Below, in pieces: positions 1 to 64,000 of a stretch of 64,000 bases of DNA (positions within the stretch are counted from its first letter, which is position 1; every line of letters begins with the position of its first letter). Under the pieces are notes generated by a model. The model saw nothing but the letters and a program-made list of their open reading frames with translations. It did no database searches and was not told where the DNA came from. The position numbers and the translations under genes are program-made. Source of the stretch: Mobula hypostoma (Eukaryota); contig NC_086109.1 of NCBI RefSeq assembly GCF_963921235.1, positions 9,548,001 to 9,612,000 of the forward strand. The letters are read 5' to 3'.

Positions 1-1039
1 GAGTTTCCCAAGCTTTCATCTTGCCACTGTGGTTTTGCAGTTTCAAGGTTATTTTTCCATCATGGAAATCATAAACTCAGAAAGGAGGCCACCCTTGTCT
101 CCGGGTGACCGATGTCCAAGCCGCTCTTGAACATCTGATGGGTCCATTGATTACGGGGTCCTTATGTCATGGTGAGTGCTGGAAAAGACTCAACTCTGGT
201 GTGCAGAAATGGCAGATTCACATTCAGAGACAAAAGCAAGAGGTTATAGGTAGGAATTCCATAGAACATCGGAGGCACAATCCAGCGACACCGCAAGACA
301 AGTCATTCTCAACACAAGGACCCCGTGTTGAATGGTATTCAGGAGACCGCTGTAAATAACCACAAAATGCGGAAAACCCGTCCCAGTCACAATTAACTGA
401 ACAAGATTAAACAGAAAGCACAAGGGCTGAACGACTCTATTTAAAACAAGAATTAGTAAATATAGGTGTTACAGAAAGGCAGAAGCCTAACGCTCTCTGG
501 CAAGCCACAAAGGCCAGCAGATCTCATGACAGCAGACCTGGTATACCCATCAGTATTTGCATGACAAATGGTTACAAAATCATTATTATTTAAAATGAAG
601 TTATTTTTCACATATCTTTTTAAAGATGAATATTAGTACATTTTTGAAGAGTTTTTCTAAAATGCCTCATTTATTTCAATCTCTCTTTGTTAGACTTTTA
701 TTAATAATTACTGAATAAATACACATAAATAAAGAGGACACATTCTTTTTCCTTTAAAAATGTTCATGATTATTGTCACTAATGCATTAATTAATGATCA
801 TTCCTCCTCAAACTTACCCTGCTGCACAGCAGAATTTCTTTAGATGATTCTCGCCAATTTGGACACACTCTCTCAAAATGGTTCTCCACCACTGGTCTAA
901 TCTATGCTTGGCTTCACCAATGTCAAGGAGGCCACGTCATCAATACCGAATGATGTTAACCAGGGTGGAAGAGGTTCAAAGAAGCATTTGTCTCACCTGA
1001 GCCATCCAGCATTCTGTTTTAGCTCTGGATTACTTTGGT

Positions 1040-1330
1040 AAGCAGCCAGAATAATCAAGGACTCATCCACCTGAGACAATGTCTCTTCTCTCCTCTCTCA
1101 GAGGGCAGAATCTACAAAACCCTGAAAGCAGGTACAACCAGGCTCAAGGACAGCATTTCCCTGCTGTTTTCAGACTATTGAATGATTCCCTAGCAAAATG
1201 AGGTAGATTCTTGAGCTCACAATCTACCTCGTTATGATCTTTCCCCTTAATGTCTACCTGCACTGCTCTTTCTCTGTGACTGTCACACTTTATTCTGCAT
1301 TCTGTTGTTCTAACTTCATTTTTTATTTTA
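1040..1330 (+). mobile_element. LINE 3'-end fragment (Rex1/L2-like); also at +21096 and +42219
   Basis: Decayed C-terminus AARIIKDSS...GRIYKTLKAGTTRLKDS followed by a 3'UTR. Confidence 0.55.
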
Positions 1331-1489
1331 CTGCGATACAGTGAGGAATAGCCTATTTTGGCCCTTCGAGTCATACTGTCCAGCAATCCTTCAATTTCCG
1401 AGCCTACCCAAAAAACAATTTACAATGAACAATTATCTTCTATTATCCCAAACCTCTCCTCCGCAGCCCCCTACTTACACCAATTCCAC

Positions 1490-60100: not shown

Positions 60101-62782
60101 TAATGGGAACAATTTGTCGTTTTTGCACATTGGTCGTTTGTCAGTCTTGTTTTATTGATAGTTTTCATAATATCTATTGAGTTTCCTTATTTGTCTGTCA
60201 TTGAATCTCAGGGTAGTACAGCACATGGTGACATATATGTACATTGATGATAAATTTAATTTGACTCTGATTTCGGCAATAAATCCAAATGAGCATTTTT
60301 GGCAAAAACGATGATTTTTTTTACTCAGAGTGACAGTCAACGGCGAGATTGTAGCTTGCGCTCAAGGTTGCCCTGCCATCGTTGATACTGGAACTTCTCT
60401 TATCGCTGTTGGCGGAAATTACATCGGCAATATTCAGCAAAGCATCGGAGCAACTCCAAATTATTATGGCCAGGTAGGGGCTGACTGACCAGTGGTGTAT
60501 ACTCAGATGGCAGCTGTTAATGCATTATGCAGTCAGCACATTGAGTTAATGAAATTATATGTCGTGCAGGCAGCAGGATTTGCGGAAAGAATGCATTCTG
60601 TTAGAAATGGCTGGGATTAACATCTCCATTCACAATGTAACAATCAGAAAACGCTGGAGGAACTCAACAGGCCAGGCAGCTTCTATAGAAAAGAATAACC
60701 AGTCAATGTTTCATAGCGAGTCCCTTCATCAGGACTGGAAAGAAAGAGAAGTCAGAGTAAGAAGGTGGGGGTGAGAGAAAGAAGAAGTAGAAGGCAGTAG
60801 GTGATAGGTGAAGTTGGGGGGAGAGGGGTGAAATAAAGAGATAGGAAGTTGATTGGAGAAAGAGATAAAGGGCTGGAGACCATTGAAAAGGGTGAAGGGG
60901 AAGGAACACCACCGGGAGGTGATGGGCAGTCAAGGAGATCAGGTGAAGGAGGGAAACGGGAATGAGGAATGGTGAAGGAGTGGTGGGTAGGTGGGGCAAT
61001 TTCCGGAAGTGCGAGAAACCAGTGTTCATGCCATCAGGTTGGAGGCTGCCCAGATGGAATATAAAATATTGCTCCTCCAACTGATTGTGGCCTTATCGCA
61101 ACAGAAGAGGAGGCCATCGATTGACATGTCGGAATGTGATTGGGGAGTGGAATTAAAATAGGAGGCCCCTGGAAGTCCTTGTTTTTCATGGTGGATGATG
61201 TGAGGTACTCGGCGAAACTGTCTCCCAAGCTATGTCAGGTCTCACTGATATACAGGAGACCACACTGGGAGCAGCAGATGCAGTAGATGACCCAGACAGG
61301 CTCACAAATGAAATGAAGTGTTGCCTCACCTGGAAGCATTGTTTTGGGCCCTGAGTGGTGGTGAGGGGCGAGGTGTACCTGTAAACATTGAGTTCATGGT
61401 TACGTTTCTTCATATTTTGAAAACGCTTCATTCAAAAGAAATTCAGTAAAGATGCACAAACCACAATTCTTTTCCTGCTTAACATTTAGATTAGCACTAT
61501 TATTTCAAAATAACTTATTGTGTTTTATCATCACTGTATATTCAACCTTTGTCTATTAGTAGTAAAAGCATTAAACCATGGAAATAGTCAGTGGGTCAGG
61601 CAGCACCTGTGGAGAGAGAAATAAAGAAAAGAGATGCTGAAAATCCTGATGAAGGGTCTTTGCCTGAAATATTAACTGTTTATTCCTCTCCACAGACTCT
61701 GCCTGACCGGTTGAGTTCCCCCAGCATTTTGAGTGATGGGGAAATCAAGTAGTGATTCACACCGATGACTTTCCATCAAAAGTGGCCATTTCTGGAAAGT
61801 CTGTCTATCAGAAATGACTAACTTCACCGATGATTTCTGAGGACTGTAACAAACCTAATTATTAGATGATGTCAGCTTACCAACATAAGCTCAGGGAAAA
61901 GAAAGTCAGAGTAGGAATGGGATGGAAATTTAAAATAACAACTATCCAGGAACTTAGGTTCATCCCTGTAGGCAGAATTAAGTGCTTTGCAAAGTGGCTA
62001 CCCTATCTGCCTCTGCTTTCTCTGGTGTAGATGAGGCCACAAAATGAACACCCAATGCAGTAAGTTTTAATAAAAAGGTATGGAGAGGATGTTTTCAATA
62101 TTGAGAGAGTCTAGGACCAGAGGACACAGCCTCAGAATAGAAGAATGTCCTTTTACAACCGTTAAGAAGAGGAATTTCTGTAGCCAGAGTGTGTTGAATC
62201 AGTGGAAGTCATTGCCAAAGATGGCTGTGGGTATATTTAAGCAGAGTAGGTAGTTTCTTGATTAAGGGGAAGGCAGAAGAATGGGGTTGAGAGGGAATAT
62301 AAGTTAGCTATGGTCAAATGGTAGAGAGGACTCGATGGGTCGAATGGCTGAGTTCTGCTCCTATGTCTTATGGTCTAAATGTTGTTGCTCTTCTTTCACA
62401 GTACTCCATCAATTGCAACAACATTGGCAATATGCCTGATGTGATCTTCACCATCAATGGATATGACTTCACTCTTCCTGCCTCAGCCTACACACTGAAG
62501 GTACGGGATTCATCAGACATATGGGGGATGAGAATTTCAAGGGATACATTCATTAACTTTGCAGAGATTAATGACACATGTTATAATGATCATTTATTGA
62601 GTGGACACTTGACCTGGTGTTAATTGCTCTCCATTTCCTTCCAGCTCAGTTACAATAGCTGCGACAGTGGATTTAGCGGCACTGGTGGAAACCTCTGGAT
62701 TCTGGGAGATGTCTTCATTAGAGAGTATTACTCCATCTTCGACAGAGGAAACAACCGAGTGGGATTGGCTAAGGCCGTCTAA
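54177..62782 (+). CDS. pga: Pepsinogen A-like aspartic protease, copy 3; 9 exons, 386 aa
   Basis: Exons 54177-54235, 54339-54501, 55086-55203, 56752-56870, 58449-58648, 59360-59479, 60329-60473, 62402-62500, 62645-62782. The only coding difference seen is a synonymous GCT>GCC at 54224. Confidence 0.95.
55254..56381 (-). mobile_element. 5'-truncated CR1 LINE in intron 3, copy 3
   Basis: Same ORF with several substitutions. Confidence 0.9.
60643..61383 (-). mobile_element. Penelope-like remnant in intron 7, copy 3
   Basis: As 18130-18870. Confidence 0.82.
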
Positions 62783-64000
62783 CTTGCCCCTGAATATTCC
62801 CATTGAAGGTCCATCCAAGTTCGTATTTGCAGGTTGACTTAAGCCATCTGATTTTTCATCTGACCCGTCAGTATCAAAGACCAGGGAGTGACTTTCAGAA
62901 TCCTGAAGGTGAAGACACCCTATTGAATGCTGGGGTTTTACTGAAAGGAAAATGCAAAAAGAGGGAGAACTGAAATAAACGCCCAGCCAGGATGGGATTT
63001 TAAAGGACCAATCTACGAATTTTGGATCTGGACTGGATATGCAAATATTGACATCATGTAATTATGCCTCTTCTCAGATTCCTCTCTTTTCCTCTCTTCT
63101 TTCCTGATTTTCCTCTTCAGCTGTGGTTTCCAGTGATTCACTCCAGAACCTTTCTCATGGAGTGAAATCTATTTGATGTAAATGTGAGCTGAACATCACA
63201 CAGCCTATTGTTCTACCCTGTGGGATATATCTATAAATAGTTCGTAACAACGTTGAATAAAATTTAATCATGAGATGCATATTACCAGAATTCCAGTACC
63301 TTTTTTCATTCATTGTGTGTGTGTGTAAAATCTTCTGGAAGTACAAACTCTGTTTAGTGGACAGAACAGAGCAAGTATTAAAAAAGTCACTGGGTGTGTC
63401 CAGGCCCCTCCCACTGCAACACACCTCCTACTCAATCCTGTCGCTGAGACCTCAAAGTATTACGTCCAAGTCCCACTGAATGCTCTCTTTTTATACAGTC
63501 CCCAGAGATAAGAAACACTGCAGTAAGTGGACCAATACACAGTGCCAGGTGAAGTCACTGAATCAGAACTAATCATCTCCTGTCACCACTCTTCAAGAAG
63601 CCCAGCCCTGAGTTTCCCAAGCTTTCATCTTGCCACTGTGGTTTTGCAGTTTCAAGGTTATTTTTCCATCATGGAAATCATAAACTCAGAAAGGAGGCCA
63701 CCCTTGTCTCCGGGTGACCGATGTCCAAGCCGCTCTTGAACATCTGATGGGTCCATTGATTACGGGGTCCTTATGTCATGGTGAGTGCTGGAAAAGACTC
63801 AACTCTGGTGTGCAGAAATGGCAGATTCACATTCAGAGACAAAAGCAAGAGGTTATAGGTAGGAATTCCATAGAACATCGGAGGCACAATCCAGCGACAC
63901 CGCAAGACAAGTCATTCTCAACACAAGGACCCCGTGTTGAATGGTATTCAGGAGACCGCTGTAAATAACCACAAAATGCGGAAAACCCGTCCCAGTCACA

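Follow-up and report, generated by a model that had tools for sequence, protein, structure and literature searches.

The stretch analysed here, referred to below as the window, comprises 64,000 nucleotides of the ray Mobula hypostoma (contig NC_086109.1 of the assembly GCF_963921235.1, positions 9,548,001 to 9,612,000 of the forward strand) and carries, in consecutive units of about 21 kb, the predicted gene of an aspartic-protease zymogen, probably a pepsinogen of type A. According to k-mer offsets and self-alignment, the 64 kb form a single head-to-tail array with three complete units and 391 bp of a fourth. The offsets of the self-alignment are 21,096, 21,123 and 21,390 bp, and the identity is 99.0-99.5% across self-alignments of 16-26 kb, a repeat far above chance expectation. 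The sequence has no runs of N, the units follow each other without gaps, and the window lies entirely inside the array, both edges of which, together with the flanking genes, are located beyond it.

1-21096, + strand: repeat unit 1 (21,096 bp), from self-alignment offsets and three-way alignment
21097-42219, + strand: repeat unit 2 (21,123 bp), from self-alignment and three-way alignment; in the majority state nearly throughout
42220-63609, + strand: repeat unit 3 (21,390 bp), from self-alignment and three-way alignment; carrying an insertion of 232 bp found in no other unit and a local duplication of 35 bp
63610-64000, + strand: first 391 bp of a fourth unit, from self-alignment; identical to 1-391

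One intact gene of nine exons is present on the + strand of each unit. We built its model from open frames and splice signals; all introns are of the GT-AG type and the same model fits the three units, giving a coding sequence (CDS) of 1,161 nt and a product of 386 amino acids, with 59, 163, 118, 119, 200, 120, 145, 99 and 138 coding nucleotides in exons 1 to 9, respectively. Proteins of the three copies are identical and the only difference in the CDS is GCT>GCC (Ala16) at 11711/54224, and tblastn against the window returned these three complete copies only, without relic exons. A putative TATA-like box occurs 55-61 bp upstream of the ATG in each unit, and AATAAA hexamers follow the stop codon at 192 and 474 nt in every unit.

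11664-20269, + strand: pepsinogen copy 1, ATG to stop (GT-AG model, translation, Pfam matches, spliced RNA contigs of the sister species)
11664-11722, 11826-11988, 12573-12690, 14239-14357 and 15936-16135, + strand: exons 1-5 of copy 1
16847-16966, 17816-17960, 19889-19987 and 20132-20269, + strand: exons 6-9 of copy 1
32787-41392, + strand: pepsinogen copy 2, CDS identical to that of copy 1
54177-62782, + strand: pepsinogen copy 3, protein identical, one synonymous difference at 54224
11603-11609, + strand: putative TATA-like box of copy 1, by sequence reading; equivalents at 32726 and 54116
20461-20466, + strand: first AATAAA past the stop of copy 1, a candidate polyadenylation (polyA) signal; equivalents at 41584 and 62974
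20743, + strand: second AATAAA past the stop of copy 1, a candidate polyA signal; equivalents at 41866 and 63256

The original prediction had been made from the letters alone, and it described whole intact pepsinogen genes arranged head to tail in a cartilaginous fish, with identical proteins, a single synonymous nucleotide difference (54224) and an array running past the window edges. Self-alignment, gene models and the comparison of CDS and proteins agree with each of these statements, the fourth unit beginning at 63610 and the ends of the array lying outside. Where it spoke of a complete promoter, nine exons and polyA signals in every unit, the nine exons stand as described, whereas the promoter and polyA elements, a TATA-like box and AATAAA hexamers present in each unit, are to be taken as putative. 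Some 170-185 bp upstream of the ATG, at 11481-11496, four clustered single-nucleotide polymorphisms (SNPs) separate the units directly 5' of the putative promoter, and no differences other than these might plausibly alter expression between the copies.

The gene is predicted to encode a zymogen of the A1 family of aspartic proteases (MEROPS A1; PF00026 and PF07966) and is apparently intact and functional in each unit. The catalytic aspartate motifs, D-T-G-S in exon 3 and D-T-G-T in exon 7, each occur a single time per unit, on the + strand, and align to the sites of pig and human pepsinogen A in the N and C lobe, respectively. Pfam A1_Propeptide (PF07966) matches the translation of exon 2 (E = 3.9e-11), and Pfam Asp (PF00026) matches the scanned translations of exons 3, 4, 5, 7 and 9 over the profile positions 1-315. 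When the protein is aligned with pepsinogen A of pig and human, the N-terminus falls, by alignment only, on their signal peptides, and the prosegment lysine and the flap tyrosine (Y-G-T-G-S) are kept, as are three pepsin disulfide pairs (Cys 108/113, 270/274 and 313/347, paired to the pig cysteines). All units also code for additional cysteines, two of which (residues 51 and 58; 11917-11940, exon 2) flank the conserved lysine of the prosegment, and one, apparently unpaired, belongs to the mature enzyme (residue 178; 16008-16010, exon 5); cysteines 51, 58 and 178 are absent from pig and human pepsinogen A and from coelacanth gastricsin.

With regard to the subtype, the closest full-length relatives retrieved, human pepsin A-4 and coelacanth gastricsin, are 54-55% identical to the ray protein. 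In a maximum-likelihood tree that contains no other elasmobranch pepsinogen, the ray protein falls within the pepsinogen clade (99/97), apart from the cathepsin E sequences sampled and outside the strongly supported clade of bony-vertebrate PGC (100/99). Its sister group is bony-vertebrate PGA, with a support of 80/45, or 85/81 in a second build. Against PDB entries exon 5 scores 78 bits with pepsin A and 57 bits with gastricsin; in a search of 50% clusters it matched distant representatives only, the best full-length ones at 54-55%. Word-index searches starting from these representatives gave mammalian PGA and tetrapod or fish gastricsins, and neither there nor in the cluster look-ups was an elasmobranch present. 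From these data a pepsinogen of type A is the probable assignment.

For comparison with reads we used read-derived contigs over 11500-17400 from two runs of the species itself (X1 and X3), one DNA run of a sister species (X5) and one RNA run of the sister species (X14). Two spliced contigs of X14 join exons 2-3-4-5-6, at 11988/12573, 12690/14240, 14357/15936 and 16133/16845, within one to three bases of the modelled borders; the X14 contigs do not cover exons 1 and 7-9. Since the joints match the model, exons 2-6 are correctly modelled and the orthologous gene is transcribed. None of the own-species RNA runs contained the pepsinogen gene; the sample list of the Mobula genome preprint includes no stomach for either of its species (bioRxiv 10.64898/2026.10.27.761883).

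Distribution of differences between the units

A three-way alignment of the units has 130 SNP columns and four insertion or deletion (indel) events, of 232, 35, 4 and 31 bp. Pairwise divergence is 0.31-0.59% overall, with about 1% in variable blocks and about 0% in a tract of 8.7 kb. Nearly all variants at unit positions 3.0-6.0 kb and 11.0-15.5 kb are private to unit 3, nearly all of those at 6.1-11.0 kb are private to unit 1, and unit 2 has 6 private SNPs in total. When the unit-1-private and unit-3-private labels are read along the unit they form 22 runs, a value reached in none of 100,000 shuffles (p < 1e-5), where 63 would be expected. Each site has essentially two states, which the units combine in mosaic fashion: alpha-beta-alpha in unit 1, alpha-alpha-alpha in unit 2 and beta-alpha-beta in unit 3.

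15499-24175, unstranded: invariant tract of about 8.7 kb, which spans exons 5-9 with the 3' flank and extends 3 kb into the following unit
36622-45298 and 58012 to the window end, unstranded: further occurrences of the invariant tract
47613-47857, unstranded: insertion of a hairpin-forming interspersed repeat in unit 3 only, from the three-way alignment, with a 13-bp target-site duplication

The invariant tract (8,677 bp) contains 2 SNP columns where 53 would be expected (P = 9e-21). Exact identity extends over 3,709 bp between units 1 and 2 and over 5,989 bp between units 2 and 3, the latter run being ended only by the window edge. Exons 5-9, that is 702 of the 1,161 coding nucleotides, lie inside the tract, in which introns and spacer are equally invariant, and therefore the identity of the proteins is weak evidence of selection. 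The remaining 459 nt, exons 1-4, lie in a block with a non-coding SNP density of 1.04% and have one exonic SNP against 4.8 expected (P = 0.049), which we would take at most as mild evidence of constraint. Thus the suggestion that identical proteins beside non-coding SNPs imply selection is weakened. In the same earlier description non-coding DNA was said to differ by dozens of SNPs and indels, which holds for the SNPs and was overstated for the indels, of which there are only the four mentioned.

At 14123-14129 two SNPs private to unit 2 match the states of the sister species, unit 2 being otherwise equal to unit 1 in this block, which has the look of either a multi-nucleotide change or conversion over a very short distance.

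Copy number, age and proposed homogenisation

Contigs of the non-repetitive parts of the unit have mean k-mer depths of 45-56 in X1 and X3 and 38-48 in X5, and where contigs derive from other copies of the intronic repeats, those with the best support reach only about 6-16 each, so that the array stands at about five times the depth of typical contigs in both species. This contrast fits a coverage of about 8x per run (134 Gb of Illumina or 113 Gb of HiFi data, four runs, a genome of 3.5 Gb), a figure which assumes that the runs, known by coded names, are those of the genome preprint (bioRxiv 10.64898/2026.10.27.761883), as would fit their pattern: four DNA runs from one sample with RNA from other samples for this species, and four DNA runs with RNA from a single animal for the sister species. 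A false duplication, for which read depth had been proposed as a check, would be expected to have single-copy depth, at most two haplotype-like copies and gaps; we found approximately fivefold contig depth (uncalibrated), three units and no runs of N. Three distinct unit sequences are also more than one diploid single-copy locus can supply. Taken together, the depth and the three distinct gapless units speak for a multi-copy locus and not for a falsely duplicated single gene; the depth is suggestive of it, and it would correspond to about five or more units per haploid genome. The minority states equal the state of the sister species at 11711, 13899, 14752, 14948, 15033, 14123, 14129 and 12021, and being shared in this way they are not sequencing errors. 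An estimate of the share of unit-3-type copies from contig depth (48.6 vs 51.1) was too noisy and was dropped.

Over 4,234 bases aligned with the window, the sister species shows 95 differences (2.2%). Out of 40 displayed differences from unit 1, 30 are common to all three units, and at 8 the sister species matches one of the polymorphic states. We infer that the sister species carries the array too. The same approximately fivefold depth there, combined with 2.2% divergence between the species against 0-1% within the window, points to an older array which has been kept homogeneous, and continuing homogenisation, as a mechanism read from these patterns, is in better agreement with the near-identity of the units than a single burst in recent time. 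If the sister species is multi-copy, which its depth suggests, an array older than the separation of the two species is the simplest reading. In exon 4 (14239-14357; X5 and X14) the sister species differs at 6 of 119 nt, 5% compared with 2.2% overall, with the changes V114E, H128S and D130N close together; this cluster could be a short conversion from a paralogue or reflect local positive selection.

The reading which we favour, and to which we would give a probability of about 0.65, is that the window belongs to a genuine array in which whole pepsinogen genes stand head to tail in multiple copies, kept alike by ongoing homogenisation. A number of points weigh against it. The depths come from Logan contigs, are uncalibrated as copy number and have no single-copy control in the window; the X14 transcript has a low depth (5-9) and belongs to a non-gastric tissue of the sister species; and the approximately unbiased (AU) test leaves a grouping with PGC (p = 0.26) and a position outside A and C (p = 0.31) unrejected. 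Moreover, the assembly of M. hypostoma is haploid and collapsed, having been produced from Nanopore reads by NextDenovo, polished by HyPo with short reads and processed by purge_dups (bioRxiv 10.64898/2026.10.27.761883). The alpha/beta mosaic could for this reason be haplotype phase switching in part, the short-read polishing could likewise blur SNPs specific to one unit, and the contigs of X1 and X3 carry the majority, unit-2-like state only. One may go further along this line and suppose that the assembly inflated what is in truth a smaller array, or just one gene, or that two haplotypes were woven into one contig; units 1 and 3, with their alpha-beta-alpha and beta-alpha-beta patterns, are complementary mosaics as phase switching would give, and the majority-only contigs can be cited for it as well. 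Read contigs, however, drop minority branches, which makes the absence of minority states from them uninformative. Such an artefact would have to produce 64 kb without gaps and three distinct units, one with a private insertion and its target-site duplication; it would have to coexist with fivefold depth in two species sequenced by different technologies and with minority states that match the sister species at several sites. The Nanopore reads, which had an N50 of 24 kb and of which those longer than 50 kb add up to 50 Gb (bioRxiv 10.64898/2026.10.27.761883), were long enough to span units. We therefore consider an artefact improbable.

Another possibility is, as in the original prediction, which called the amplification recent, that a single pepsinogen gene went through one lineage-specific burst selected for dosage, and that the units are alike because they are young. 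The overall divergence of 0.31-0.59%, the identical proteins and the private repeat insertion that one unit has since gained would all agree with a burst. The sister species, having about fivefold depth and 2.2% divergence while the units here differ by 0-1%, would however require two independent bursts, and the variation is uneven, with blocks at about 1% beside 8.7 kb at about 0%, contrary to a simple age model; as to selection for dosage, nothing in the data bears on it. A separate recent amplification in each lineage is possible, and a single event is doubtful; we regard the burst as unlikely, though less so than the artefact.

Returning to homogenisation of a real array, we propose that, in the manner known from primate PGA, misaligned units would keep exchanging sequence through unequal crossing-over, gene conversion or both. 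Such exchange may yield the alpha-beta-alpha, alpha-alpha-alpha and beta-alpha-beta mosaics, and the 8.7 kb tract may be a stretch homogenised across all units. For the animal, the likely effect of the array would be one of dosage, that is more template for one identical stomach zymogen. What the original prediction added on variable copy number, on diet or life stage and on embryonic digestion of uterine milk is speculative. In a fuller version, put forward only tentatively and with the odds somewhat against it, the array is older than the divergence of devil rays from manta rays, each species has about five or more units that evolve in concert, and the exon 5-9 tract (8.7 kb) swept all units very recently.

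Other features of the spacer

The repeat inserted in unit 3 is young and 232 bp long, with arms 96% complementary over 183 nt. Older relatives with 75-79% identity are located at 6653-6776, 15548-15617 and 18147-18225, with equivalents in units 2 and 3, and the family is extremely abundant, the bin 15440-15636 having a summed contig depth of more than 1 million. At 8560-8830, 29683-29953 and 51073-51343 there is a minisatellite with a period of 39 bp, repeated about 7 times (70% matches) and equal in copy number in each unit. An open reading frame (ORF) of 153 amino acids at 2160-2618 matches Pfam ALKBH8_N below threshold (17 bits against a cut-off of 21) and is probably what remains of a retrotransposon ORF. 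No further gene was found in the 11.6 kb spacer; the Pfam scan of long ORFs outside the pepsinogen gene gave no family above cut-off, and the Rfam scan of one unit gave no match.

Comparison with known tandem arrays

Tandem arrays of pepsinogen genes have been described in two other settings. In humans the genes PGA3, PGA4 and PGA5 form such a series, and tandem PGA duplicons occur in Old World monkeys, apes and the manatee; the duplicons are about 99% identical and variable in copy number, and de novo recombination events and long homogenised tracts have been reported for the human locus (bioRxiv 10.64898/2026.08.17.745382). In elasmobranchs, a ctse-pga-pgc tandem cluster between rab7b and frs3 underwent lineage-specific expansion (Sci Rep 2026, PMC13389413), and the same paper gives 4 pepsinogen genes in 157 kb for the whale shark, 8 in 313 kb for the skate and 18 in 580 kb for the catshark. 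The ray array resembles that cluster, whose pepsinogen genes stand in tandem and have expanded by lineage; the portion of the paper at hand deals with gene counts and synteny in three species, no mobulids among them, and near-identical 21 kb units or homogenisation are not described in it (PMC13389413). The genome preprint on Mobula hypostoma and M. yarae mentions pepsin 0 times (bioRxiv 10.64898/2026.10.27.761883). The ray array is thus a further example of tandem pepsinogen arrays already published in mammals, sharks and skates, and by itself it opens no new question.

Human AMY1, the gene of salivary amylase, is another digestive-enzyme gene that has expanded in tandem to several nearly identical copies, and it has a documented link to diet. 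Both AMY1 and the ray genes are tandem digestive-enzyme arrays, AMY1 belonging to a different enzyme family, and the link to diet is that of AMY1. With PGA and AMY1 the ray array extends, now to a cartilaginous fish, a recurrent theme of digestive-enzyme genes kept as near-identical tandem arrays. The practical value of it lies in annotation and in population work on threatened mobulid rays: as the copies are indistinguishable by short reads, the locus will be mis-called unless it is handled as an array.

The parallel with human PGA3, PGA4 and PGA5, drawn already at the outset, proves to be apt. In primates the duplicons lie head to tail, each with a whole nine-exon gene (PGA3 and PGA4 being about 99% alike), and among them non-allelic homologous recombination has made hybrid units, and long tracts are homogenised; in the ray we find head-to-tail whole-gene duplicons with 99.0-99.5% identity over 16-26 kb, and mosaic units with an 8.7 kb tract, a mosaic that could also result from phase switching where haplotypes are collapsed. 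The two also differ, as the ray is a cartilaginous fish whose protein is 55% identical to human PGA4, and the ray proteins, unlike those of primates, are fully identical among the copies. Transposon-bounded duplicon edges and copy-number polymorphism are features of primate PGA, and the ray array is known from its interior in one individual. The likeness suggests that the same recombination-driven turnover is at work in a lineage about 450 million years distant. If the units do evolve in concert, the array would probably be copy-number polymorphic, and giant filter feeders would provide a clean counterpart, outside the mammals, of human PGA with its high instability.

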